From Phaeosaccion multiseriatum (taxonomy: Eukaryota > Protista > Ochrophyta, other classes): a stretch of 64,000 bases of DNA. The notes under the pieces were generated by a model, which searched no databases, was not told the DNA's origin, and saw only the letters and a list, made by a program, of their open reading frames with translations. The stretch spans positions 2,542,001 through 2,606,000 of the forward strand of contig OZ218963.1 in assembly GCA_965112735.1 (NCBI GenBank). The letters are read 5' to 3'. Positions 6,832-56,335 of this stretch are shown piece by piece. A program made the position numbers and the translations under genes. Numbering within the stretch: position 1 is the first letter of the stretch; each line of letters opens with the position of its first letter.

Positions 6832-9800
6832 TCATTGCTCCTTGCTCTTCGAAGACCGCCTCCTCACATACAGCATACGACCACCCCACAACACAACAAG
6901 CACAACCAGGGCAATCACACAGCCAACCAGCGGTGTATACTTGAAAGAACCCCCTAACAGCGCGACAACAGAAGACAAAATTTCCCCAAGCACCGGTCCA
7001 AGGATGGCGGTAAAGCTTGCTGCGTTGTACGCTTCTCCCCTATGGCTGTAACAGCGCTGCCAGGGCTTGGATGTGTACCATGTGTACCAGCGACCCCAAG
7101 ACCCTGGCGGTGACGCTTGACTTCGGCCGTCCACATCCTGTCGAGAGGATTGGATTCGATCCAAGCGGCGGGACGGGACGGGGGAGAATGCATCATCGAA
7201 GGGAGTCTTCACCCGTTTCGCCCACTGCACACGGTATCGTACAAGTAAAGTAACAATATCACACGTCTCCATCGTGGAGGGAAGGACGGGGCAGGGGCCA
7301 AAAACTTACCTGTTTGCAACGTTTCCAATGATTGCACCTCTCCTCCTTCTGCCGTTCCTCCTCTTTGTTCTCCTCGACAAGCTGATTCTTCCAGACCCCC
7401 TCGAATGCTGTCTCCGAGCTGCTTTGGGCATTTTCCAGCTCCGGCGCTTCAAACATCCTGTCCACCTGGATATTAGCGTTTCCCAGTGCCATCCACGAGT
7501 CTTCCTTGTGGTGATGACAGGAACCAGAACACCCGAATCCTTTCGGGTTGAGGCTTCCAAGTGTCTTCTTGTCACGACTGAATCTGGGCCAGGAATCCTA
7601 AAAGGAACGAAAAAAATTGAACGTCAGCACAGAAGCCCGCCACCTATCAGGCAGTCACTTCACAAACAGAAGGAGATTCCTCTTACCTCCCACAAAAGAA
7701 CTGTCTCCAAGGAGCAAAACGGACAAGTGAGACGACATCCTCCGCACTCATGTGCAACGTCCCTCAAGACTTCACGCGTCGTCCCCAACATGAAGCCAAG
7801 GGCGCTCGCCGCCACACTCCCATTGCCCAAGGCTACCTTCGGATCCCCAAAGGAAGCAAGGATCAGCTTTCTCTCTCCGACGTCGTAGTTTACGTAGGCC
7901 CTAAAGGGAGAACCAGTGTAGGCCCGCACCGGTGCCAGCCAAGCCCCAGTCTTCCAACGCAAAAAGGTGTCACCAAGCTTAGCCTTCACCAGCGCGCTCA
8001 CAAGGGACCCGATCTTCCAAGAGGGAGGATGGTGTTTCCACTCCAATGTAACCCTCAGCTCCCACCTCTTGAATGCTTTTGCCCATTCGACTGCTTGCTC
8101 TCGCTGACGGCAGCCCTCTCCGCCAGGAATGCTCTCATCTGGTATTCTGAGGGTGATCTGATAGTGTCGGCCGCCATCCTCCAAACTCTCCACCGGAAAC
8201 AGGATGCCTAGATCTTCGAGCTTCTCAAGGATAGCTCTAACATCGCTCTTCTCCAACACGTGGATCCCCATGTCTTCCGCCGCACGCCCCCACTTTACGA
8301 GCACACCATCCCACAACGACTTGGCGAACTCTTCGGTCAACTCTCCATTCAGCAAGTCAAGCGCTCCCTTGAAGTCGTCCATGTGCTCCTGAACCCCGCC
8401 TCGTACTTGCTCTTGCGGTGTCACCTGTCGAGATTGGCAACCGAGGAGCGATCCCATCCATGAGAATGTTATGAACCATACCGGGGGAACAGTGCCTCAC
8501 TCAGCTTGTCCAGAGAGAAAAAAAGGCACGCACCTCGCCTACCACAATCCTCTGGGCATTGCCACGTCCAGTTATGATCATCTTGTCCAATGGAGTCAGC
8601 AGCGGGCTAACGATCCGTGCGAACCAAGCCGAATCGAGAACAATGAGTGTCCTATCGTGTTCAATGTCCCCTACTACAATGAGCACAGCATTGTGGATCC
8701 TGGAAAGGAGAGAGTATATGCGAAAGCAAGGTCAGTTGTAGGCAGTTCCAAAGGGAAAGACTAGCGTTCTGAGCGACTTACATCATCCTCACGACGCAGT
8801 GCAAAACACCTTGCAAGGTAGCCGAATCACCCTCAAAAAGTGATGCCTTGTCCACCCCCAGCTCTTGCTCCTTCCCACGCAGCGTGTCGCATAGACCGTC
8901 CCACCGGGCTCGTAGCTCACCCATGGTCATGATGTAGGGAACACTGGGCCTGCTCTCTTGCGGTGCTGTGGATGAAGATGACAACGCCTTGATGACTGTG
9001 TTGCACAAGACTTCGTCTGTGGTACCTCTTAGAGAGAGAGTCTCCAGCATGATGAGGGCAGCCTGCCAAGGCACACCAACCACAAACTTCCTACAGCCCT
9101 TCGCGTACAGTTCCTCAAGGAGGGCACCCGATGGATCAAACCTACTCCACCCTTCGCTGAGGATTCCAAGAACATTCTTGTACCACGGGGCGCAGCTCAC
9201 GGGGTAGGAGGGTAGGGAGCGCATGGCATCTAGAAAGCGTTCACGTCCAGCACGAGCACGTCCATGTGCTTCTTCTTCTTCCTCTTCCCCCTCTTCGTTC
9301 TCCAGTGATATTGTGAGTATGCCAACCACGCGCTTTCGGATACGGTCGGCCTGCTCTAACACGCGTGGCACTCGTCCCCAAACGGGCACTTTGTCACACT
9401 TGGAACCAACCAGCACCAAACGAGAAGGTCCTGTCGCAACACTTTGGTACCGCAGTGTTTCTACGAAGGGTTCAACGTCGAGCCGCATTCGGTCGTCAAA
9501 GCCTTCCTCACCACCACTCTCACAAAACTCACGTGCCCTCCACAGCAACAGGTAAGTTGCGCCATCCGGACAAAAGAAGGAGTACAAGCTGCGGTACAAA
9601 ATCTGCCCCCCACAATCAAAGAATCGCATTGTGATGGGCTCATCCCTCGGTCCCGTTGCCTCCCAGGACACCATTTCAACCCCTGTAGTTGAGGGGTTTG
9701 CGCCCGTTGTGAGGGCAGCCCGTCGACATTGTAGGCTGCGAAGTAAGCTGTGCATGGGTCGGGGGTGCAGGGCGTGGGGTAAGCCTTTGGAGTCTTTGTC

Positions 9801-12330
9801 TGCAGAAGAGTTCAACCGAAGCAGCCGAGAGAGCAACGAGAATACAAGCCATACCTCGTCTTTCCAGCACCGGATGCACCGAGCAGAACCACTTTGATGG
9901 TGTTGTACACGCCACGCCCCTCCAACACAGATTCATAATAATTTTCGAGGGCGGCGCTGCCTTGTTTAGCTACGCCGAGAGGGGGGAAGTCGAACGGGTT
10001 CCCATCGAAGCCCCCTGTCGTGCCGTGCCGCGCAGCGAAGGCAATAAGGCCTTCCACCTCCTCACAGCTTGGATCCCAAAGCCCTGTGTGCGAGGCGTAA
10101 CAGCACAGAAATAAGAAGAGGGAAAACATTGATGGTGCGGCACACGAAGTCAGTGCACACTTGGAGCGGTGATATGAGGTAAAGGCGGGCGGCATGTTGC
10201 GACAGCTTCCTTACGCAAACCCGATTTTCACATGGAAAAGATGCAAGCTCGAAGAGTTTTCCAGGCTCAGCGGAGTCGCACGTTGGTAACACCACTTACC
10301 GCTGGCTGACATTGTTGTCCTTTAGGAGCAGCCCCCAGTTACACACACTAATATAAGTAAAAGAGACACGAACGGGTTCGCGTACCACTTACCAGTGAGA
10401 TTGTTGTGCCGCAGGCTGAGCACGATTAGGTTCTCAAAACTTCCAAGCTCCCTTGGAATGCTCCCTGCGGAGCGAAGGGGAAGTTCTTTGTCACACGACT
10501 ATCAAACGAATGGGACGCGCACGGGTGTGCGTACCCACTACCTTCTAGACTGTTCTTGTTGAGCTGAAGTTCTCGAAGGTTCGAAAGCTCTCCAAGTTGC
10601 GGCGGAATGTTTCCTGAGATGTGGGGAAAGTTCTTCAGCCACACTAATATCAAGTGAAAGGGACGCGAACGGGTGTGCGTACCACTTACCAGTGAGCTTG
10701 TTTTCGTCGAGGTACAGTCTCTTTAGGTTCTGAAGACATCCAAGCTCGGGTGGAATGCGCCCTGCGGATGGGATGAAAGTCCTTTGATCATACTCATATC
10801 AAGTCAAAGGGACGCGAACGGGTACGCGTACCACTTACCGGTGAGCTTGTTGTTGTAGAGGTACAGGTGCGTCAGGTTCTCAAGACTTCCAAGCTCGGGC
10901 GGAATGTTCCCTGTGGAGCGGAGGAAAGTTCTTTGGTCATACTTACATCAAGTCAAAGGGACGCGAACGGGTATGCGTACCACTCACCGGTGAGCTTGTT
11001 GTTGTAGAGGTTCAGAGTCTGAAGGTTCTTCAGCCTTCCAAACTCTGGTGGAATGCTCCCTGCAATGGGAGAAAAGAGTTCTTTGGTCACACAAATATAA
11101 AGCGAAAGGGACGCGAACGGGTACGCGTACCACTCACCGGTTAGCTTGTTGTTGTTGAGGGACAGTTTCTCAAGGTTCCGAAGACCTCCAAGCTCGGGTG
11201 GAATGCTCCCTGCAATGGGAGGTACGTTCTTGTCACACGACTATCAAGCGAAAGGGACGCGAACGGGTGTGCGTACCACTTACCAGTGAGCTTGTTGCCC
11301 CACAGGCTGAGCACCGTCAGGTTCTCAAGACTTCCAAGCTCGGGCGGAATGCTCCCTGCCGAGCGGAGGAAAGTTCTTTGTCATTCGACTATCAAGCGAA
11401 TAGGACGCGAACGGGTGCGCGTACCACTTACCAGTGAGCCTGTTGAAAGAGAGGTCCAATTGCTCAAGCTTCTTCAGACTTTCAAGCGCCGGTGGAATGC
11501 TCCCTGCGGATGGGAGGAGAGTTCTTTGGTCACACTAATATCAAGTCAAGGGGACGCGAACGGGTGTGCGTACCACCTACCTTCTAGCCGGTTCCCCCAG
11601 AGCACAAGTTCTCGAAGGTTTGAAAGGTGTCCAAGTTGCGGCGGAATCCTCCCTGAGATGTGAGGAAAGTTCTTCAGCCATACCAATATCAAGTCAAGGG
11701 GACGCGAACGGGTACCACTCACCGGAGAGGTTGTTGTAGCTGAGGCACAGCTCCACCAAGTTGGTCAGCCGCCCCAGCTCTGGCGGAGAGGTCCCTGCGA
11801 AGCAGAAGAGAGTTCTTTAGTCACACAAATATGAAGGGAAAGGGACGCGAACGTGCGCGTACCACTCACCGGTGAGGTTGTTGTCGCCGAGGCTCAGCCC
11901 CTCGAGCTTCTCCAGACTTCCGAGCTCCCCTGGAATGCTCCCTGCCGGTGGGAGGAAAGTTCTTTGGTCACACTAATATCAAGTCAACGGGACGCGAACG
12001 GGTTCGCGTGTATCAGACAGATGTATGCGTCTCCCTTCTCTCTCCCCTTCTTTCCTTTCCCCTCTCGAAGGATACACACTAAAATCACGAGGTTCATGGA
12101 AGACCAACCCCCACCTCCGCCCCAACCTCTTCCACGGCCTTCTCACCTTCGAGCCCGTTCCTGGAAAGGTCGAGCTTGACCACAGATCCATTATCCACCG
12201 TCACTCCATGCCACTGTTCCAAAGGTTGTGAAGTCTTCCACCCCCCTCTTTGTGTCCATTGCTCTCCGTTTGTGGCCCCATAGAGGGCGATGAGTGCTTC
12301 ACGCTGCTGCGGCTCTTCTACGTGCGACAT
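6832..12330 (-). CDS. LRR-ROC-COR (ROCO) protein with two C-terminal TM helices, multi-exon
   Basis: Inferred exons: 12330-12147 (LRR N-cap); 11 x 72-bp LRR exons; 10083-9855 ([14 protein letters not shown]); 9747-8782 (SLLRSL, TTGVEM, FFDCGGQ, LVGSKCD); 8699-8534 ([17 protein letters not shown]); 8424-7687; 7597-7310; 7224-6832. All are GT-AG and frame-consistent if the broken exon at ~10300 is skipped. Confidence 0.85.
10290..12010 (-). repeat. LRR exon-intron cassette array 1 (11 intact units + 1 broken)
   Basis: 72-bp exons at 11870-11941, 11723-11794, 11581-11652, 11432-11503, 11284-11355, 11138-11209, 10988-11059, 10839-10910, 10690-10761, 10542-10613 and 10393-10464, separated by conserved 70-78-nt introns. 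Confidence 0.95.
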
Positions 12331-12728
12331 CACGCACTGGGGTGTGCTGGTTCTAAAGAGTCGCCGCCAGGCCGGGAAGCTGCCCCTACCCCTGTGATCT
12401 CCTCCTGCTCTTTTTTCTTTTCCCTACTCCTGTCTCTGGCCCTGCAGGAATACAGATTTTCATGAGGTGCAAGTGCTGCTATTGCCACTGCTGTCGCTAC
12501 AAAAGGAATCCTTCTGGCACTGTCTGCTGCCTTGTTCTTTGGCGCTATCTTTTAAGCTATATTGTCATGTGTACCATTCTATGTGAAATTGTCAAGAGCA
12601 ATCACGTCTGTTCGTTATGGGTGTGTCATAAAAGATGCGGGTGGGGCTGAGAGAGGGCCAGGAAAGATCTCTGCATGCAGGAGCGGAAACCCCATTCGAA
12701 ACGAAGTATTCCGCTCCATTTCTTTCTT

Positions 12729-20042: not shown

Positions 20043-22359
20043 CTAGATCCTCGCATCACCAAGTGGGCTGAATTCTGGCTTATCCTCGCCTCCGTCAGCG
20101 TCTGTCCCTTCCTCTCGCACCACCCCTTCCCCTTGTATCGTCGGGTCTCCCGCACTGAAACAAAACCGCGCAGCCACCCTCATCAAAATATGAACACACA
20201 GAGCAGTTGCGGCGATGATGATGCTGTTTCTCACGATGTGGTCCGGGACGTCTTTAACTCCTCCGAGTCCAGCGAAAAGCATAAAGAAGACGTTCTCAAC
20301 AGCTACCAGCGCAATGACCGCCACCTGCCGGGTTTCGTCTTGCAACAGCGCTGAGACGAAGCCTGCAGCAAAAGCATTGAGTAGGCGCAATCGCTTGCTC
20401 CCCAGATCATCCGTGGTCTTCCCATGCGATTCGATACACCATCGCGTCCAAAGCAGCCAAGGTAAAGCGAGGAAGCAAAAGTTGCCCGTAGTCAACGCAA
20501 AGAGAACCATCGATAACATGCGAGACAAAATGTCCGTCAGGTGGAAGAGCAAGTGCCATCCAATGTGCCGAGCGAGCGCCAGTCCGTACAGGATGTAGCG
20601 TTTCGACGACGCACATAACGCTCCAATAGACTGCCGGGGCGCACTATAGAAGGCTCTGGCGTGTCGTGTTGTGGCCAAACAGAGGGTCTGTAGATACGCA
20701 CCAAGCGACGCACAGGAGGTCCACAGGAAGAGACCTAGCGATGTGTACCATGACGTGCTTCGCTCTGGGGTCTCTTGTGCCGCTAGCTCTTCCGCCGTCT
20801 CTGCTGCCTTCTCCCCAAAAATTTCGAGAGACGCGGCCTCCAGGGAATTTTCTACCTTTTCCGCACTCAAGATGCTCATGAGCTCCCATGCCAACGAGAA
20901 AATCGACCCGAACACCGATATCAAGAGCACATTGGACACGCTGTCAGTATCCCATCGGGAGAGCAGTGCGTATAGCTGAATGAGCATCTGCGGAATGGTC
21001 TCGAAGACCGACTCTCCCCACTTCAGCAGAACCATTCCCGCTGTCTTTTTCCCCCCACCCAGCTCCGATACGCATCAAAAGGAACCAGCAAACAAACCAT
21101 GGCGAGAAAAGGGTCCCAAGATGAGTGTGAAGTGGAAGTCAGGGCTGCCACTCCGATAGTCGGCAACACAAGAAAGGCGACAGCAAGCCAACACAGCGCT
21201 GGGCTATACTTGGCAAACGCTGCTATCGCCGCAATGTCCGAGACCACATCCCAGTAGTAAAGAAGGACATCGCTTGCCAGAAAGAATTTCGAGAGCGACG
21301 ATTTGATCTCAGATTGCTCAATGGCTACAGCTGAAAAGTCGTTCCCCGGAAGTATGTAGTCTTTATCAAATTTCCTCAACCACGACGGAGGAACAACGCC
21401 TACGAGTATACAAGAGCGACAAGCGTGTCAGATTCAAAGTTTAAGCACATCAAGTATGCCACACTCACATAAGTTAGCGTTCACACCAGCTCGAAAAAAA
21501 CAAACAAATCAAAAGACGCGAACGGGTGTGCGTACCACTCACCGGAGAGCTGGTTTCTATGGAGGAACAGATGGGTGAGCTTGACGAGACGTCCAAGCTC
21601 GGGTGGAATGCTCCCTGTAGATGGAGGAGAGTTATTTGGTCATACTCAATCAAGTGAAAGGGAATGCTCTCTGCGGAGCGGAGGTACGTTCTTGTCACAC
21701 GACTATCAAGCGAAAGGGACGCGAACGGGTGTGCGTACCACTTACCAGTGAGCATGTTCATGGAGAGCTCCAAATGCACAAGCTTCTCCAGACTTCCAAG
21801 CTCCCTTGGAATGTTCCCTGCGGAGCGGAGGAAAGTTCTTGGTCATACTTGCAGCAAGTCAAAGGGACACGACGCGAACGGGTGGGCGTACCACTCACCG
21901 GAGAGCTGGTTGTGGTAGAAGTTCAGAACGGTGAGCTGGACGAGACGTCCAAGCTCGGGTGGAATGCTCCCTGCGGATGGGAGGAGAGCTCTTTGGTCAT
22001 ACTCGTATCAAGTGAGCGAAAGGGACGCGAACGGGTGTGCGTGTATCAGATGTATGCGCCTCCCTTCTCTCTCCCCTTCTTTCCTTTCCCCTCTCGAAGG
22101 ATACACACTAAACTCACGAGGTTCATGGAAGACCAACCCCCACCTCAGCCCCAACCTCTTCCACGGCCTTCTTACCTTCGAGCTGGTTGGTGGAAAGGTC
22201 GAGCTTGACCACATATCCATTATCCACCGTCACTCCATAGCATGGCTCCAAAGGTTGTGTCGTGTTCCACCCCCATCTTCGTCTCCATTGCTTTCCGTTT
22301 GTGGCCCCATAGAGGGCGATGAGTGCCTCACGCTGCTGCGGCGCTTCTACGTGCGACAT
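20043..22359 (-). CDS. LRR + XK-related (Xkr/CED-8-like scramblase) fusion, with one frameshift
   Basis: Exons 22359-22176 (N-cap); LRR exons 21970-21899, 21817-21746 and 21614-21543; then from 21399. XK motifs WDVVSD, ESVFETIPQMLIQLY, SIFSLAW and DILSRMLSMVLFA. One-base frame break at ~21047-21056. Confidence 0.7.
21513..22045 (-). repeat. LRR exon-intron cassette array 2 (3 intact units + 1 deletion scar)
   Basis: Same exon and intron consensus as array 1. Confidence 0.92.
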
Positions 22360-22570
22360 CACGCACTGGGGTGTGCTGGTTCTAAAGAGTCGCCGCCAGG
22401 CCGGGAAGCTGCCCCTACCCCTGTGATCTCCTCCTGCTCTTGTTTCTTTTCCCTGCTCCTGTCTCTGGCCCTGCAGGAATACAGATTTTCGTGAGGTGCA
22501 AGTGCTGCTATTGCCACTGCTGTTGCTACAAAAGGAATCCTTCTGGCACTGTCTGCTGCCTTGTTCTTTG
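22020..22570. repeat. Segmental duplication of 11990-12540 (upstream region, N-cap exon, intron 1)
   Basis: Long near-identical stretches shared by the ROCO and XK genes. Confidence 0.9.
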
Positions 22571-24744: not shown

Positions 24745-27700
24745 TCACAGCTGTTGTTTCGCCGAAGAAAGTGAGGTCTCTCCCTCTCCCTCCTCATCCC
24801 CCCCCTTCTCCTCCTGCCTCCTGCCTCCTCCTCCTCCTCGTCCTCCTCCCCCTCCCCCTCCTCCTCCTCCTCCTCCCTCTCCATCCTTGTGGTCTTGCCT
24901 TCCAGCACTGGTGCCGTCCGATGGCTGTAACAAGAAAGGGACTTGAAAATCACCCGTTGGATGGATACTATCAGGCAACCTCCTACGCCGAAGCTCCCAA
25001 CAGTACGATACGACAACAAGGGCAAAATAGCCGAGCACCACACATATAACGACGCTGATCTTCACTTCCTTTGCCCCTTCAAGAAAAAAGGTGGTGGCCC
25101 CACTGGCACACAGAAATGTGAGGAGTGTCGTGATTGCCCTCTTACACGTTACCCACTCCGCTGACTCTTGCGTGAGTTTTGCGTCAAAGGCTTGACATGT
25201 GGCTCCAATGGTAACATCCGTGGCACCAACCTCCAAGTCATTTGGTCCCAGGACCACTACAATGGGCTTAAGAGCGGTTGTTGTTGTCCCCTCCACAGGC
25301 GTGACGGGATGTACCATGACGCTCGTAGGCCCAGTCTCACTCTTTAATCGAACCGAGAAAAGAAGCGGGTTGCGCTTGTGCAGCATGGCCTCTCTGCCCG
25401 CGATGAAGCCTTTTCCTGCGTCTTCTGCAGTGAATCCCTGAGACAGGAATGAGAACGCGAGGAAGGAGAAAAGCAAAAAGGGTCGGTGCTGAGAGAAGCA
25501 CAGCAAGCAGCCCCCAACCACTAGCACTAGCTAGGCAGCCCAGTAGATCAAATGCAGGCCCCGTGTTCTTACCAAGGGCCTCATAGGGAGACTACCGACC
25601 CTCTCTGCCGTCGCGTCCACCTTCATTTGTTCCCTTACGTAATCCTTTATACTGTTCCGCGCGTGCCACTTAGCATCGTATTCTCCTTGAACAGTACGGA
25701 GCTCGAAGCGTGTCCCTTCCAGTGCCACGAGGAGGAGCGCTCTATCCCCGTTTCCATATACAATTGAGCACCCAAAAGCAAGCATGGGTCCGACAGCAAT
25801 ATCTGTTGTGGGGGAAACGTATGAAACATACGTAAGACAGGGTTGCTTGGTGTGGAAAGACTGAATTCCAGTTCCAGGGGGAGGTGAGATTGCTTACCTG
25901 GCACAGGGCAGGATATACACAAACAGTTCTTGTCGAACGCCTTGAACTCTACTTCAACAGCGAAGTCATGAGTGCCATCCTCCTCCTCCGGAACCCCCGT
26001 GGGTATCGCCCTCCTCACTCGGTATGACCACCGCCACGCCCGTTTCCACTTCTCGCCGTTGTGCCGAGTATGCACGTTGTGTCGCCAGAGGTTGGGGTGA
26101 GCTGCTCCCATGACGGGATATGACACAAGGATGGGGTGGAGGGGCAAATGCTGAGTGCACTCGAGCGTGATGATCGGGCCAGCCGCCACGTGGCCAGCAG
26201 GCAGAGCAGGTACGTCATCCGGGGCATTCGCTTCGCGGGCATTCGCTGCGGTGTCGAAGTCTACGGTCAGGGTCAGACGCTTCCCCGCTTTCAGCGCATT
26301 CGCTGGCACTGTCACACCCACACCCATGAGCACATCTTCTGAGACGATGCCTTTCCGCGACAAATCCCTCGTCAGCGTGATCTCAGCGGAGAATTTCGAC
26401 CCCCGTGCCCCTCTCTCCTCGATTTTCTCCTCCCACCTTCCTTCCCCGCTCTCCTCGTCCCCTTTCTCCTTCAACCAGGCCTCCCTCCTTCTATCGTTCC
26501 TCTCCTTGTGCCGCGGTACTGTTTCAATCTTGTCCTTTCCTTTCTCCCCTAGTTCTGGAGGAAGAGAAGAAGCACAAAAGCAAGCCAGGAGTGTTGTCAA
26601 CGTTTGCGTGCTTAGAACTTCGCCTCATGGCCACACGTACGCCTCTCACCTCTCTTCCTCCTCGCTTCGTCTACAATTTGTCTCTCAATCTCCGTAACGT
26701 TTCCTGTAGGTTGGGTGCAGAGAGAGCCAGAGAGAGCGTGGTAGGGGAGGAACCAATGCCATGGTCGTGTGACAGTAGAACAGAGACGGTTCTCGCGTAC
26801 CGTGCACGTAATATAAGGGAGGAGCGTTTGTGTTCGCGTACCACCTACCTTCTAGAGAGTTCCATGACAGCCTAAGTTCTCGAAGCTCTGCCAGCTTCCC
26901 CAACTCCTTTGGAATGTTCCCTGTGGAGCAAGGAAAGTTCTTTGGTCACACTAACATCAAGTGAAAGGGACGCGAACGGGTACGCGTACCACTTACCGCT
27001 GAGCTCGTTGTCGTGGAGGTACAGGTACTGCAAGTTGGTCAGATCTCCCAACTCCTTGGGAATGCTCCCTGTGGAGCGGAGGAAAGGTCTTTGGTCACAC
27101 TAATATCAAGTCAAAGGGACGCGAACGGGTGCGCGTACCACTCACCGGTGAGCTCGTTGCTCCGCAGGTTGAGCACCGTCAGGTTCTCAAGACTTCCAAG
27201 CTCGGGTGGAATGTTCCCTGCGCAGCGGAGGAAAGTTCTTCAGCCATACTTGTATCAAGTCAAAGGGACGCGAACGGGTGTGCGTACCACTTACCGGAGA
27301 GCTGGTTTTCCCCCAGGTAGAGCCCCCTCAGGTTCTCAAGACTTCCAAGCTTGGGCGGAATGTTCCCTGCGGAGCGGAGGAAAGTTCTTGGTCATACTAA
27401 CATCAAGTGAAAGGGACGCGAACGGGGTACGTGTACCACTCACCGGAGAGCTGGTTGCTGTGCAGGCCGAGCAGCGTCAGGTTCTCAAGACGTCTAAGCT
27501 CGGGCGGAATGTTCCCTGCGGAGCGGAGGAATGTTCTTGGTCATACTAACATCAAGTCAAAGGGACGCGACGCGAACGGGGTGCGCGTACCACTTACCAG
27601 TGAGCTCGTTCATGGAGAGGTCCAAATTCACAAGCTTCTCCAGACTTCCAAGCGCCCTTGGAATGTTCCCTGCGGAGCGGAGGAGAGCTCTTTGGTCACA

Positions 27701-28248
27701 CTGATATCAAGCTAAAGGGACGCGAACGGGGTGTGCGTACCACTTACCAGTGAGCTTGTTGCCCCACAGGGTGAGCACCGTCAGGTTCTCAAGACTTCCA
27801 AGCTCGGGCGGAATGCTCCCTGTCGAGCGGAGGAAAGTTCTTTGTCATTCGACTATCAAGCGAATAGGACGCAAACGGGTCGCTGGACTGCCACACCGTG
27901 CCGCGCCTCATCCCTTCTCTTATCCCCCTTTGATCGCCCTTCCCGAATATTCTAGACCCATCACAAGTAGATGCATGAACAGAGAGAGAACTTCCGAACA
28001 TTCTGGAAATACTTCAGAATACTCTTCAGTACCTCAGGCGGAACAACCACAATCACGTCTCTCTCACATTTGAGGCCGTTCTGCGCCAGATTAAGCTTCA
28101 CAACATAGTCATTCTCTACCGTCACTCCGGCCCAGTTTTCTACAGGTGCTTTCGTGTTCCATCCTGCTTTGTTAAACCAGTCGGGTCCTCCCGTGGCGTG
28201 GAAGAAGGCCGTGAGTATTCTACGCTGTCCCTCGAGAACGCTAGGCAT
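24745..28248 (-). CDS. LRR + ZU5-like domain + two C-terminal TM helices
   Basis: Exons 28248-28068 (N-cap); 7 x 72-bp LRR exons; 26703-26650; 26554-25898 (GVGVTVPANAL..GPIITLE..PILVSYP, ZU5-like); 25802-25573; 25437-24745. GT-AG and frame-consistent. Confidence 0.7.
26830..27880 (-). repeat. LRR exon-intron cassette array 3 (7 units)
   Basis: Exons 27748-27819, 27598-27669, 27444-27515, 27295-27366, 27146-27217, 26997-27068 and 26849-26920. Confidence 0.95.
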
Positions 28249-28388
28249 CGTAGCCTTCGCAATACGCAAACACCGGTAGCAGTTCGCCTGTCCTTCTTCT
28301 TAGTGTATATAGTACGCACACAAACTGAGCGAGCTTTGAATCCTACTCACAAATGGACGCCACCTTCCAGGAAGTATGTTTGTGGCCT

Positions 28389-33518: not shown

Positions 33519-36500
33519 TGTAAAAGCGACTTGAGCCGCTTAGACAAGTGGTAACACTCGGTACATTATCCGGGATGGAACCCGTTTGCAAGCCCTGCTG
33601 CTAGGCTCTCCTTACCAAGATCACCTTTTCTGAGGGTCCATCGCCACTCAGAATCTACGTAATATAGGACACACCGACCATTGACTTATGGTCCATCTCA
33701 CTCTGAGGCCTTCCAACATCCCCAATGCCTATCCCGTGACCTTCCAACATCCCCAATGCCTATCCCGTAACCTTCCAACATCCCCTATACCTATTTCCCC
33801 TCTGCGGCCACTACCACCGCAAGGTATAGAACCCGAAATGCTGCGCCGTCTCCGCAGCGATGCCCATCCCCCACTTCTCGTGCCACATGGCGCGCACGGT
33901 GCGCTCTCGCTTAGATCGCTGCCCACGCTTGCGCTGCACTCCCGGGTCCAACGCCCCTGGCGCCAAAGAGTCCTCGAATGCCTCTATTGCAGCCCTCTTT
34001 CCGCGCCGCAAGAGCCAATCGTCCCACTCCCACGTCTGATAGCTGCCGCCCTCCCCTACAGCCCAACGTACACAGTACTCGAGCCGGAGTGGCTGCCCTG
34101 TGGCCTTACGCCACCTCATCTTCACTATCCGCGCCAGCTCCGGCTCCCGCCCTACCCCGACCTCCCCGTCGGTCACGCTGCGCTTCTCCTGCAGTGCACT
34201 AGTACCCCAGTGGGCTGAGCAGTAACGGATGTGGTATCGAGCGAACCCGTCTGGTAGCCCTTCCGGCTGGCCACTCACCCCATCAACGAACGGCTTGGTG
34301 AGGTCCCGATGGTACGCCCCTTGCTTGAACTCCACTCCCCCGCCTCTGACCCTCGGCACATCCAGATACACCGTGCTCCGGCGCATCACTGCGTCGTGCT
34401 CATCGTTGAGAACCCCACCATGTCGCGCCTGAAAGGCCTGCTGTGTGGGCCAAGCCAGGACTTCGAACGGTCCGTCCCAAGCATGACTCAGCGCCTTGAG
34501 AGTCTGTGCCTTCTGCTCCTCCATGGCCTCACCCTCCTTCTGCGCCGCCCCCCCTGGACGGTACAAACACACCTTGGTGCCAGGAGGCATCGGCGCTGGT
34601 CAGCGACGCTCACGGTTCTTGAGCTGTAGTCTGCTGCGGTACTCCTCGCGCCTGCCCGTCACCACCTGCGCCGCCGCTGCCATCCGCGCCCTCAGCTCAT
34701 ACACCCATGCCGAAGGCGTCTCGAACGAGCCGTCCTCCTCGAGGGCAGGCAGCATCGCTTGAAGCGGAATCGGGGGGTGTCGACCAAAGAGAGTGTAGTA
34801 CGGGGAGAGGCCTGTGGTCTTGTGAGCCCTACAGTTGTACGCGTACGTGAGCGCGGGCACATACTCGGGCCACTGCTGCATCTGGGCCTCCACCGTCGTC
34901 GCCAGCATGTCCTTCATCGTGGCCATGAAGCGCTCCACTTGCCCATTGGCTTGCTGATGCGTCGGCGTAGTGAAGACTTGTGATGTCTGGAGTACGCGCA
35001 GCACATCGGCCATGAGCGTGCTCGTGAATTGCGATCCTTGGTCACTGACCAGCACCTTGGGCGCCCCCAGCACCGTCACTACATCCCGCACGAATGCCCG
35101 AGCAATGCCCTCCGCAGTATAGTCCTTGGCGCACAATGGCACCACCACCGTCCATTTTGTGAACCAATCTTGAAACACCAAAATGTACTCCTCCCCCCCC
35201 ATGGCCATGGGGAATGGTCCTGCCACGTCAGCACCCATAACCGCCCATGGCCCATTCACGGCCTCCGATGATATGGACGAGAGCGGAACCTGTTGAGGTC
35301 GCCTCCGTGGTGTCTTGCGTGTCTGGCACGCAAGACACGAACAGGCCCAGTACAACGCGTGCCCGTTCATGGAGGGCCACAACACTCGCTTCTGCAGCGC
35401 GTCCAGCATCCGCCCAGGCCCGTGGTGTCCGCCTGAGACTGCATCGCCGTGAGTGGCATGCAGTAGAGCAGGCCTGAGCGCCTTTGGGACACAGAGCTGC
35501 AACCTCGTTCGCTCTACTCGCCACCGTCGCCCCCCGGGGGCCCACTTGCGACGAAGGACTCCATCGCCATCGAGAGAGAACTCCCCCCCGCCCGCATCGA
35601 ACACCCCCTCGCCCGGGGAGGCTGTCAAGACCTTCTGACGCCACACCTCCAACTCAGCGTCCTGCTGCTGCGCCTTCACCCACCACGCGGACTCGTAAGT
35701 ACGAGCCCCATGCAATATGCGGGCTGCGCACGACTGCTCACCCACTGCCGGGGGAACACCAGAGAGGGACCACCCAAATTGCTGCGTAGCAGCCTGCCTT
35801 GCGGACTCCACGTCTGCCCGCGCTGCTGCCTCGCTCGCCGCAGCCGCATAGGCTTCGGTGTCAGCCGCAGGAGTCTCGTCATCCTCTCGCCCCTCCACCA
35901 CCGTGGGCGTGCCGCCAACTGTGAGTCCGTCACCGCCTCCTCCTCCTCCTCCTCCTCCTCCTCCTCCTCCTCCTCCTCCTCCTCCTCCTCCTCCTCCTCC
36001 TCCTCCTCCTCCTCCTCCTCCTCCTCCTCCTCCTCCTCCTCCTCCTCCTCCTCCTCCTCCTCCTCCTCCTCCTCCTCCTCCTCCTCCTCCTCCTCCTCCT
36101 CCTCCTCCTCCTCCTCCTCCTCCTCCTCCGCCGCCGCCGCCGCCGCCGCCGCCTGCAACCCCTCCTCAGCCTCCTGCGCCCACCACTCCATCACCGCCGC
36201 CTGCTGCGGCTGCTGCTGTGGCCGAGGGCGTCGCGCTCTCTGCCTCCACCGTCGATGCACCCACCACGCCCGCTGCCTCGACGGCGGCAGGGATGTCCCA
36301 CGCCACACCTTGGGTCTGCCACTGCTGCTGGGCTTCTGTGGGGGTCACCATGGTGTAGTAACAGCCCGTATCCTCGGCGATGGCACTCCACGTCTTCTCA
36401 ATCATAACCGCTCGAGGGAACGACAGCTTGCCACGGCGCCGCGCCGCGGCCGGCCGATAGCGCGCCCTGAACTGCTCCACTGCTGCCATGAGCTCCGTCC

Positions 36501-40451: not shown

Positions 40452-41043
40452 TGTTGGAAGGCCTCAGATGAGATGGGCCATAAGTCAATGGCCCAGGCCC
40501 AGGCAGATGCGGTGAGAACGGGTGGCGTGGCTCTCACTATCCTATGTGCGAAGGTGGTTGTTTAGGACTAGCATGCGATAAGTTAATAGAGGCAAGGCTG
40601 GCTGCTAGGCTGGCTTTGGGGTTGCTGTTACCTTGTCCGTGTGTCTAGTTCTATCCTATCTGTAGGCGACAGCGCATGTCGGTCGTGCGTACGTCGTTTT
40701 ACAGATAGGATAGAACTGCCTAAGCCTCTTGGCTAAGTGCTGCTTTCGGGCCTTTGGGGTTGTAAAACGACGTACGCACGACCGACATGCGCTGTCGCCT
40801 ACAGATAGGATAGAACTAGACACACGGACAAGGTAACAGCAACCCCAAAGCCAGCCTAGCAGCCAGCCTTGCCTCTATTAACTTATCGCATGCTAGTCCT
40901 AAACGACCACCTTCGCACATAGGATAGTGAGAGCCACGCCACCCGTTCTCACCGCATCTGCCTGGGCCTGGGCCATTGACTTATGGCCCATCTCATCTGA
41001 GGCCTTCCAACATCCCCAATGCCTATCCCGGGGCCTTCCAACA
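40452..41043. mobile_element. Foldback insertion of two inverted R1 LTRs
   Basis: TGTTGGAAGGCC...GGCCTTCCAACA ends, TSD TTCA; removing it restores the integrase frame GFMKLHVKQ. Confidence 0.88.
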
Positions 41044-42683
41044 TTCATGAACCCTTCTGGGGACTCTGCCCATATAACTCCATCGCCAATCTTGACGAAG
41101 TCAAACCAGATGAGCTGCTGGGGTCCAGTAGCGTGCCATTGAGCTAGCAGGGGGCGAGGCACTCTCTCGCCCTTGCCGTTGGTGAGGCAGTGGAGACAGT
41201 TCTGAACGAGGCTTCGCACGTTCTTGTCTAGCGCATGCCAAATGAACTTCTCCTTAATAGCACTCAAGGTGTTTGTCTCTCCCTGATGGCCCATCATACC
41301 CTGATGGCCAGTCACACACAGTCTCAGGTGCATGTCCTCCGCCTTGGCTCCCACCGAGGGAATCCAAATGCGGGTGCTGTCAGCGGGGTTGCTCGTCGGA
41401 TGGCACGCTCGAATCAACCCGTCGTCGCCAACTGATGAGAGGAGCAGGCGGCGCCCGTTCTCTCCCACCTCCTTGCTAGCCTGCTGGAGCTCCTGAAGAG
41501 CGTCTGCCTGCAGACTGGCAATCTCAGTCTTGGAGGGCCAAGTGAAGTCGTCACACATAGTGTCAAACACTTGCATGGGCCCAAACTTGCCCAAAGCGAG
41601 CACACTAGGGGTAAGGCTCACTGGTTGCGTGTACCGCCTGCTAATGGGGTCGGCCCAATCATGGAGATGACCAGGGAAGTGGACAATGACGTAGTCAAAG
41701 CTCTGAAGGCGCACGGCCTGACGCTGCAGCCTGTCCCTCATAGGCTTAGTCATGCCAGGGTACCTGCTGTCGTTGCTCATCATGAACGCCTGGTTGCGAT
41801 GGTCGCAAAAGATGTGCACTTTCTGTGCCCCGACCAAAGCGTACTCGTTCTGGATCAAGCCTCGGAGTGTCGCGTCTCCTTCCTTGTCTATGGTGGCACG
41901 CCTCAGCTCTGCGCCTTCAAAAGCGCCTGAGCCGAAGGCCACTGGGATGTGGTTCATCTCATGTACCGGAAGGCACAGCTCTTTGGGGTCGATGTATGTA
42001 ATCATACATCCCCAGTAGAGGTCGCTAGCATCTGGGAATACCAGTGCCAGTTTGGTTGGGTCTGGGTGCGACAGCACCGTGTTCTGTGCAAGGACGCGCT
42101 TAATCTGGAAGAAAGCGTCGTCGTGCTCTGTGTCCCACCCCACAGAGGCCAACGGAATCGTCTTGGCCACTGCCTTGGAGCGCTTGTGCTGATGAGGCTT
42201 AGCGTTAGCCTGCCCGAGGGCTTTGTTCAACAGCGCGTTCAAAGGACCCACTAGCTTAGCGAAGTCCTTGATGTATCGATGAAACCACTGCAGGCTGCAG
42301 AGGAAAGTCATCAAATCTCCAGCCGTCTCTGGGGCCGCGAGACTGGTCAGGCCCTGCACTCTGGCGGGGTCATGTCGCGTGCCGCGTCGGTCGTGCACGC
42401 GGCCTAGGAACTTAAGCTCTTTGCCGAAGCGGAAGGAGCTCAACCCTATGTTGATGTTGGCGCTGTGGAGGCGCTTCATCGTCAGTCGAGTGAGGCGCAC
42501 CATGTCCTCTCCCACCTTTGCCCAGTACGCTACGTTGTCAATGTAGACGGCGTGGGTCTTGCACAACTCTTTGCGAAAGAGGTGGGTCATCTGGCCTTGG
42601 ACGTAAGCGCCCGAGTTCTTAGCCCCTTGGGGCACTCGAGTTGGCGTCACTTTGCCATTTGGGAATATATAGGTGTGAGCAAC

Positions 42684-43069
42684 TGTTAGAAGTCGTACTT
42701 TTGCTAGACTGATACCTGCCCTGTCTGAATTGTTAGAAGTCGTACTTTTGCTAGACTGATACCTGCCCTCTGAATTCAGACCGGGAGGTATCAGTCTAGC
42801 AAAAGTACGACTTCTAACAAGACCGTTGCTAGAGGACGAACCCCCCCCCCCACCGCACATAGTGGAGAGAAGTAACTCGCGGTCTGAGAATCAGCATCAT
42901 GGGCCGGCAAGCTGGTAACAGTTTTCGCCGAAAAATACGCTTTTTCACAAGCGACAGCTAAGGTTCGAACTCACAACTAGCCTTGTTAGAAGTCGTACTT
43001 TTGTGTTGATACCTGCCCTCTGAATTCAGACCGGGAGGTATCAGTCTAGCAAAAGTACGACTTCTAACA
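42684..43069. mobile_element. Hairpin-ended element R4
   Basis: TGTTAGAAG...CTTCTAACA ends, TSD CAAC; inserted in the family B RT. Confidence 0.88.

Positions 43070-55400: not shown

Positions 55401-56335
<935 letters not shown>

Follow-up and report, generated by a model that had tools for sequence, protein, structure and literature searches.

A 64,000-nucleotide stretch of the genome of Phaeosaccion multiseriatum (assembly GCA_965112735.1, contig OZ218963.1, forward-strand positions 2,542,001 to 2,606,000; the whole stretch is called the window below, and positions are counted from its first letter) contains three minus-strand, receptor-like genes built of tandem cassettes, each of which consists of a 72-nucleotide exon encoding a single leucine-rich repeat (LRR) and an intron of about 77 nucleotides. 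A 14-nucleotide core, CCCGTTCGCGTCCC, occupies positions +17 to +30 of these introns and had been proposed, in an earlier reading made from the letters alone (the sequence-only reading), to be a candidate crossover signal at which the arrays begin and end. Nothing found here shows the core to be a dedicated crossover signal. Cassettes have clearly undergone exchange, which can be resolved most easily in the core region, and a passive preference for exchange within an island of identity is plausible. On balance, the probable explanation is that the one-LRR-per-exon arrays are subject to ordinary homology-dependent exchange, for which the core is a passively favoured site.

In this explanation, arrays would grow, shrink and homogenise by exchange between misaligned units, through unequal crossing-over and short-tract gene conversion both within and between genes. 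The core and the block next to the donor, as the longest stretch of identity between diverged units, would be where exchanges most easily start or resolve. Array edges would be intronic because a junction elsewhere would break the reading frame, the 5' edge keeping the branch site and acceptor of a cassette and the 3' edge keeping a donor. The common 5' edge would have formed once and been inherited with exon 1 and intron 1, and the 3' edges would be separate junctions a few bases past the core.

Conservation of the intronic core

Cutting the arrays by splice-site context gives 21 single-LRR exons of exactly 72 nucleotides (11, 3 and 7 in genes 1, 2 and 3), separated by internal introns of 70 to 82 nucleotides except for one of 131 nucleotides (gene 2 intron 2); the period reported by Tandem Repeats Finder is 149 bp at 10344-12003, 21661-22042 and 26899-27880. 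Across the 18 internal introns, the mean pairwise difference is 0.040 in the core and 0.022 in the block GGTAC at +7 to +11, compared with 0.195 over the intron as a whole and 0.47 at 4-fold synonymous sites of the exons; the two bases at +14 and +15 differ at 0.5-0.6. By column permutation, a conserved run as long as that of the core has p = 0.0015. The 14-nucleotide core is the best-conserved piece of the repeated intron, and not by chance; in this the sequence-only reading, which had found it better conserved than many exon codons, was correct. The far greater uniformity of the intron, and of its 14-nucleotide block, than of synonymous exon sites is a real and so far undescribed detail. Neither a conserved intronic motif or dyad nor the location of array edges is described in PMC3341825 or PMC11378527, and text searches of the literature found none.

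The core constitutes the loop and 3' arm of a 24-nucleotide imperfect dyad just after the donor (GG.ACGC-NN-A CCCG TTCGCGT.CC), of which an example, GGTACGC-NN-A CCCG TTCGCGTCC(C), is found at 11108-11131 on the minus strand. At a tolerance of two mismatches, the core has 23 matches in the window compared to 0.49 expected, all of them on the minus strand and all within the three arrays. Its absence from the rest of the window speaks against a general splicing element shared with unrelated introns. Window searches with the donor block of the cassette and with the 3' half of the intron likewise gave no matches outside the arrays and only minus-strand matches within them. An introner-like mobile intron was considered as a source of the repeated sequence and rejected, as within the 64 kb the intron sequence was found only beside the 72-nucleotide LRR exons of the three arrays. 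In a metagenome scan, the pattern of dyad plus core had 0 matches; a pattern for the start of the exon matched 14 metagenomic loci, all of them intronless LRR genes of bacterial or plant type.

With no more than two mismatches, the core is found in all internal introns and at five of the six array edges, a presence that tandem duplication of the intron would explain equally well. Cores at the edges are more degenerate than internal cores (at least two mismatches in 4/6 versus 2/18; Fisher p = 0.018), which points to homogenisation rather than a requirement for the core site by site. The greater uniformity of internal cores than of edge cores, together with an intron difference of 0.195 compared to 0.47 at synonymous sites, is the signature of concerted evolution.

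Linkage within the cassette

According to the sequence-only reading, the mobile unit runs from core to core. Correlations between the distance matrices of adjacent segments at the 18 internal junctions do not bear this out: the Mantel r was 0.42-0.44 (p about 0.003) for the two halves of the exon, and the 3' part of the intron was no more closely tied to the exon downstream of it (r = 0.09) than were the two parts of the intron to each other across the core (r = 0.14). The r2 of site pairs was 0.05-0.10 in every class beyond 10 nucleotides (0.076 for intron-to-exon pairs), with a null of approximately 0.06, and background was reached within 10-20 nucleotides everywhere. The units are finely mosaic along their whole length, which comes close to an even spread of breakpoints, although the power of the comparison is low. 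Exon type had also been said to travel with the upstream half of the intron. This is true of the two exons on which the statement was based (10542-10613 and 11581-11652), for only the last 30 or so nucleotides of the intron, but not of a third exon of the same type (26849-26920) or of the pair of SMN-type exons in genes 2 and 3, all of which have different upstream introns. The same 5-nucleotide duplication within the core (CCCGTTCGCGTCGYG...) occurs on the minus strand at 21869-21887 in gene 2, upstream of the SMN-type exon, and at 27567-27585 in gene 3, downstream of the SMN-type exon; its position on opposite sides of the exon implies that intron and exon have reassorted or that the slip has recurred.

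Comparison of tracts of high identity between units gives a similar picture. One cassette of gene 1 (cassette 5, 11270-11416, minus strand) is near-identical to cassette 1 of gene 3 (27734-27880), with 5 differences over 178 columns in a tract that extends from just before one core to approximately 12 nucleotides past the next; among the loose ends of contigs assembled from public sequencing runs, a gene 3 contig diverges at 11416. Other tracts end in the middle of an exon or about 10 nucleotides past a core, and many tract starts are set merely by the hypervariable dinucleotide at +14/+15. Between two units, the longest exact match has a median length of 21 nucleotides, and in about 60-66% of the 153 pairs it includes the core; exchange that depends on homology should, between diverged units, be resolved there more often than at other positions. 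Up to the array, genes 1 and 2 are almost the same in sequence, but the arrays themselves differ, with 11 and 3 exons of different composition.

The core, or the dyad that contains it, might instead be a dedicated recombination site, a cis signal for a machinery by which cassettes are cut out, inserted or inverted from core to core, whether in the germline or the soma. The cassette common to genes 1 and 3 from core to core is in keeping with such a site, and several paralogue contigs change their best-matching unit in or beside the core; however, core-to-core linkage blocks are absent, the ends of the other tracts are exonic, no inverted cassettes are present in the window, and an invariant block of 20 nucleotides will collect unresolved breakpoints by its length alone. 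With these observations and those on the array edges and the dyad that follow, a dedicated site is very unlikely.

Array edges and their origin

Bracketing of n exons by n+1 cores, which the sequence-only reading had claimed for all three genes, holds for gene 1 (12 cores for 11 exons) and gene 2 (4 for 3) but only doubtfully for gene 3 (7 for 7), whose supposed eighth core (26819-26832) matches at 7/14 bases. The switch from unique to repeated sequence in intron 1 had been placed at the core. It is near the core in 3/3 genes, but in genes 1 and 2 it lies approximately 5-12 nucleotides 5' of the core, and the sequence before the core (TAC..GCGAA/GCACA) is still common with the cassettes. Intron 1, on the minus strand in each case, is unique for about 135-200 nucleotides before it turns cassette-like. 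In gene 1 (11942-12146, 205 nucleotides) the 5' 135-145 or so nucleotides are unique, the cassette-like sequence begins at about 12014 and the first core is at 11989-12002; in gene 2 (21971-22175, 205 nucleotides) the first core is at 22022-22035; and in gene 3 (27820-28067, 248 nucleotides) approximately the first 25 nucleotides are homologous to the corresponding intron of gene 1, no alignment is possible in the middle, and the cassette-like sequence begins at the core itself (27866-27879, 2 mismatches).

The shared 5' edge of the three genes is one inherited event, not three recurrent observations, as is shown by a 5' module common to genes 1 and 2 and by the homology of exon 1 and of the start of intron 1 in gene 3. 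In gene 1 the module, of about 540 bp, covers the upstream region, exon 1 (start codon ATG at 12330) and the stretch of intron 1 that is unique (12003-12540, minus strand), and it is duplicated in gene 2 at approximately 22036-22564 with 90-100% identity in each 50-nucleotide window, falling to about 0.8 after the core. In gene 3, exon 1 is homologous, intron 1 is at the same position, and its first 25 or so nucleotides are similar to those of gene 1. The sharpness of this edge and the collapse of identity between genes 1 and 2 after the core are forced: sequence downstream is open to overwriting by other cassettes, but conversion from cassettes cannot cross into unique sequence, for which there is no donor. 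Exon 1 (12147-12330, 22176-22359 and about 28068-28250, minus strand) encodes the same N-terminal cap in 3/3 genes and ends in an LRR-like LxLxxNGLx, so that intron 1 stands where a cassette intron would and may itself be such an intron that gained an insertion of 130-170 nucleotides just after its donor. The unique part of intron 1 was also considered as a decayed cassette; this was rejected, the local alignment score in gene 1 being 21 against a shuffle maximum of 21 and that in gene 3 falling below the shuffle mean.

The last introns were said to revert to unique sequence at or soon after the core. They do so in gene 1 by 50 nucleotides (21 nucleotides past the core) and in gene 2 by 38 nucleotides, but genes 1 and 3 carry further decayed pieces of cassettes, so that the 3' edges lie either 8-21 nucleotides past a core or among decayed remnants. 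The last intron of gene 1 (10084-10392, minus strand, about 309 nucleotides) has 50 cassette-like nucleotides with a core at 10363-10376 (2 mismatches); that of gene 2 (21400-21542, minus strand) has about 38, with a core at 21513-21526 (2 mismatches), and is then unique; that of gene 3 (26704-26848, minus strand) retains the donor and GGTACGCGAA intact ahead of the degenerate core position given above. Remnants are seen at 10272-10319 in gene 1, where a twelfth cassette is represented on the minus strand by an exon tail (10300-10319), a donor-like sequence (10285-10299) and a degenerate core (10272-10285), and at 26783-26801 in gene 3, where a second donor-proximal block forms a partial copy, GGTACGCGAGAACCGTCTC; the remainder of each intron is unique. 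With such remnants within the last introns, the array ends are ragged rather than clean. Descent of the 3' edges from a common ancestor was considered and rejected, as no alignment of the unique parts of the three last introns scored above shuffles; the three 3' edges are therefore separate junctions. A viable 3' junction keeps the donor and loses the branch region and acceptor, and a viable 5' junction does the opposite, which confines edges to about +7 to +50 of the intron; their proximity to the core is therefore only mildly surprising.

A further junction lies inside the array of gene 2, whose intron 2 is 131 nucleotides long because it contains a partial cassette (21661-21715, minus strand). 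This piece of 54-55 nucleotides consists of the entire 3' half of an intron with its CAG and the first 10 nucleotides of an LRR exon, of which the first base is changed from G to A; the part of the next intron that follows the core adjoins it directly. At the deletion junction, the exon (ATTCC) and the last bases of the core (CGTCCC) have TCC(C) in common. A dedicated recombination site would account for a deletion junction at the end of the core and for the n+1 cores of genes 1 and 2; against it, the 5' edge was inherited from one event, the 3' edges lie 8-21 nucleotides off the core, and the edge cores have decayed.

The layout might alternatively be a relic of the founding duplication. In that case, two neighbouring introns would have shared a segment of about 35-45 nucleotides (the dyad and a few bases), a single unequal crossover between them would have produced the hybrid intron and the n+1 arrangement, and later arrays would have inherited the layout with a core that has no present role. 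The overlap between the cassette sequence present in intron 1 (from about -12 of the core) and that present in the last introns (to +8 to +21) is exactly the layout that recombination between flanking direct repeats leaves behind, and a GCGAA variant found in edge introns, possibly ancestral, completes a perfect 7-bp hairpin with a 4-nucleotide loop. Such a relic leaves unexplained why internal cores are near-invariant in the face of a synonymous divergence of 0.47, and the three non-homologous 3' edges cannot all come from one event; this origin is highly doubtful.

The dyad and its hypervariable dinucleotide

The two invariant blocks of the dyad, GGTACGC and GCGTCC, are mutually complementary. 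Every cassette has a hypervariable dinucleotide at +14/+15 (for example, 11122-11123), which may be GC, AC, GT, AT, CC or GA and which is flanked by two almost invariant blocks. The GT form completes a 12-nucleotide palindrome, and the GA form, which is confined to first and last introns, yields a perfect hairpin of 7 bp with a 4-nucleotide loop. The hairpin ACGCGAA-CCCG-TTCGTGT was flagged by a scan for bacterial promoters and terminators, which has no bearing on a eukaryotic gene. The dinucleotide differs between genes 1 and 2 (GA versus AC) despite flanks that are about 97% identical. The palindrome GGTACGCGTACC that the sequence-only reading noted beside the core does exist, but only in 3 perfect copies, as one (GT) variant of the dinucleotide within GGTACGC-NN-ACC; as a conserved feature it was rejected, and the imperfect dyad remains. 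In the consensus unit, self-complementary runs do not exceed 7 nucleotides, and the run of that length is exonic. General decay of CpG was discarded as the cause of the variable dinucleotide, the other five CpGs of the region being invariant. A conversion gradient centred on the core was also discarded, as nowhere in the intron is variation greater than directly 5' of the core. At each array edge, only the array-side half of the dyad is retained.

Invariant blocks around a hypervariable dinucleotide resemble the spacer-and-arm layout of recombinase sites, and targeted recombination has been proposed for such genes by Zambounis et al., who found no signal; yet a perfect palindrome or hairpin is present in a minority of units only, and no recombinase is linked to the core here. 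Pfam scans of eight open reading frames, beyond which no further search for a recombinase was made, gave only the integrase of a Ty3/gypsy-type element (40899-42860). That the 24-nucleotide dyad is the cis-acting site of exchange, deletion or inversion of LRR cassettes, whether through a dedicated enzyme or through template switching directed by the hairpin or palindrome, and hence the missing mechanism of the LRR exon shuffling for which a role as a recombination-based immune repertoire has long been suggested in brown algae, is quite improbable.

The same features could act at the level of RNA. The dyad (GG.ACGC with GCGU.CC), or the pattern CCC-N8-CCC, might be an intronic splicing element that defines short exons or tunes their skipping, in which case purifying selection would keep the element in every intron flanking an LRR exon and so produce the n+1 copies. 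RNAalifold predicts a hairpin of 9 pairs between donor positions +3 to +13 and the 3' part of the core, at -7 kcal/mol; complementarity links the two blocks that vary least, with the variable dinucleotide in the loop; the core is conserved above chance and far above synonymous sites; and alternative splicing of such LRR exons has been reported in Ectocarpus (PMC11378527). The alignment, however, has one compensatory pair versus two broken pairs and so offers no covariation in favour of the hairpin, the loop CCCGTT is as invariant as the stem, folding z-scores of whole introns are weak (-0.08 to -2.4), and there is no match in Rfam. Moreover, the arms are not kept together at the edges: in gene 3, intron 1 has a core without a 5' arm and the last intron has a 5' arm without a core. 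A splicing element is rather unlikely as the explanation, and the z-scores and the absence of an Rfam match do not support a mirtron or other structured intron RNA either.

Several observations weigh against a core that is favoured only passively by homology-dependent exchange. All three 3' edges fall within about 20 nucleotides after a core or core remnant, the deletion junction in gene 2 intron 2 is exactly at the 3' end of the core, and the cassette common to genes 1 and 3 is one clear case that runs from core to core. Site pairs that span the core have nominally the lowest r2 of any class (0.048), and the sample is small, 21 units and 18 internal junctions with only 4 informative sites 5' of the core giving low power. 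Homogenisation also leaves unexplained the uniformity of the core (0.04) and of GGTAC (0.02) relative to the dinucleotide between them (0.5-0.6) and to other positions of the intron; as the conserved run is longer than expected by chance, some site-specific force, be it selection, biased conversion or targeted exchange, is needed to account for conservation beyond the neutral expectation.

Organization of the three genes

Each 72-nucleotide exon encodes an LRR of plant type, GxIPxELGxLxxLxxLxLxxNxLx (in looser form, GxIPxxLGxLxxLxxLxLxxNxLx), and 21/21 exons are symmetric in phase (1-1), both starting and ending after codon position 1, which lets any one of them be followed by any other. The array of gene 1 (10393-11941, minus strand) has 11 exons, with first bases at 11941, 11794, 11652, 11503, 11355, 11209, 11059, 10910, 10761, 10613 and 10464 on the minus strand, and introns of 70-78 nucleotides. 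Downstream on the same strand (8778-10083) are exons for a linker, the Roc P-loop GASGAGKT and, after an intron at 9748-9854, the rest of Roc and a COR-like tail. The spliced model of gene 1 (exon 1, the 11 LRR exons and the downstream exons) is an uninterrupted open reading frame of 724 amino acids that encodes the N-terminal cap, 11 LRRs and the Roc P-loop, and contains the motifs GASGAGKT and DCGGQ. Its Pfam match to Roc is weak and below the gathering threshold (E = 0.0012, 19.5 bits versus 27), and a COR domain was not detected. A word-index protein search with the Roc open reading frame gave no match, and an exhaustive search of representative proteins gave 14 distant Roc matches of 30-41% identity over approximately 80-140 amino acids.

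The order of LRRs followed by Roc is found in gene 1 only. In gene 2 (array 21543-21970, minus strand), three LRR exons with first bases at 21970, 21817 and 21614 are fused to an XK-related exon with which the gene ends, an assignment that comes from a Pfam match on the downstream open reading frame at 20043-21035; an exact-product look-up with the gene 2 open reading frame returned no record. Gene 3 (array 26849-27819, minus strand) has seven LRR exons with first bases at 27819, 27669, 27515, 27366, 27217, 27068 and 26920.

Four public sequencing runs were used as assembled contigs; one of these (X5) behaves like RNA and the other three like DNA, and the joints in these contigs, which come from loci that are paralogous, give no view of rare products. 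In X5, intron 1 of gene 1 is spliced (contig joint 11940/12146, with CT..AC ends that correspond to GT..AG on the minus strand), as is the intron in the Roc region at 9748-9854 (joint 9747/9855). The depth of X5 is zero across 10110-10391 in the last intron of gene 1, and there is none over the upstream region either. A joint at 11210/11283 was discounted as proof that an internal cassette intron is spliced, as it has a one-base offset on each side and its sides are short. Joints at 10088/11172 and elsewhere in X5, which comes from a second sample, connect the first exon after the array to sequence that best matches another LRR exon, possibly owing to an allelic or paralogous difference in the array or to exon skipping. 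In the three DNA-like runs, word depth within the array (10392-11942) is 30-70 times the flanking single-copy depth, with a peak over 10533-10814, and more than 1,100 contigs per run fall on the array at a likeness of at least 95%. The cassette family is therefore abundant genome-wide, and each unit has many partners for exchange.

Elsewhere in the window, the minus-strand polyprotein open reading frame of Ty3/gypsy type at 40899-42860 has matches to reverse transcriptase, RNase H and the integrase zinc finger, and there are long simple repeats at 55401-56334 ((AG)n, about 930 bp) and 35936-36129 (perfect (CCT)n, 194 bp).

Comparison with other repeat-containing genes

Other tandem-repeat genes offer partial parallels. 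In the spider Flag silk gene, which Hayashi and Lewis are said to have described in 2000, repeated introns are reportedly more alike than the exons they separate, and intragenic recombination and homogenisation are credited with this. The arrays of P. multiseriatum are alike in having tandem exon-intron units with introns more uniform than exons; they differ in that diversifying pressure seems to act on the exons at exposed LRR positions, cassettes are common to different genes, and conservation of the intron is blocky. The WD40 repeats of fungal NLRs of the HET-D/E type, reportedly the subject of work by Paoletti et al. in 2007, are said to be highly conserved internally, homogenised by unequal exchange and diversified at few positions. 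They too are tandem repeats homogenised within candidate recognition proteins, but they lack introns and therefore any intronic element. In V(D)J recombination, signal sequences consist of conserved blocks around a less constrained spacer, and lamprey VLR genes are assembled by copying of LRR cassettes. Modular segments, in the case of VLR also LRR cassettes, are the common ground with the present arrays; in contrast to those systems, no incomplete germline gene, flanking donor library (in the window), link to a recombinase or deaminase, or rearranged form is shown here, and breakpoints are not confined to the motif.

The closest parallel is in brown algae, and the arrays described here have the architecture already known from the ROCO genes of those algae, with cassettes of one LRR per exon. 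In Ectocarpus, ROCO and other LRR genes contain type I LRR exons, which are 72 nucleotides long and in the register GxxPxxLxxxxxLxxLxLxxNxLx (Zambounis et al. 2012, PMC3341825), and genes that were duplicated recently hardly differ apart from a 'highly recombined' LRR domain; targeted, possibly somatic, recombination was proposed, with no signal, enzyme or mechanism found and the question 'not investigated in depth' (PMC3341825). Teng et al. 2024 (PMC11378527) added other brown algae, favoured alternative splicing and labelled the intron phase differently; COR is undetected in most brown-algal ROCO proteins too (PMC11378527). Common to both sets of genes are one exon of 72 nucleotides per LRR, a symmetric phase, an apparent order (in gene 1) of LRRs followed by Roc, cassettes also in non-ROCO genes, duplicates near-identical outside the LRR domain, and arrays of varying length (in the window, with partial cassettes at 21661-21715, 10272-10319 and 26783-26801). 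LRR exons on the non-coding strand within the LRR domain are frequent but not universal in the published genes (PMC3341825); the present arrays differ in having none, all matches to the core, the donor block and the 3' half of the intron being on the minus strand.

In brown algae, the leading candidates for pathogen receptors are genes with one-LRR-per-exon cassettes, and if an intronic element did mark the points of exchange, the proposal of targeted recombination would become directly testable. The pattern of edges and linkage in the window is the one expected of ordinary homology-driven exchange together with inheritance. It sets the null for a genome-wide test of that proposal, in which junctions would be counted at viable positions only, paralogous edges would be collapsed into single events, and the length of the invariant block would be corrected for.

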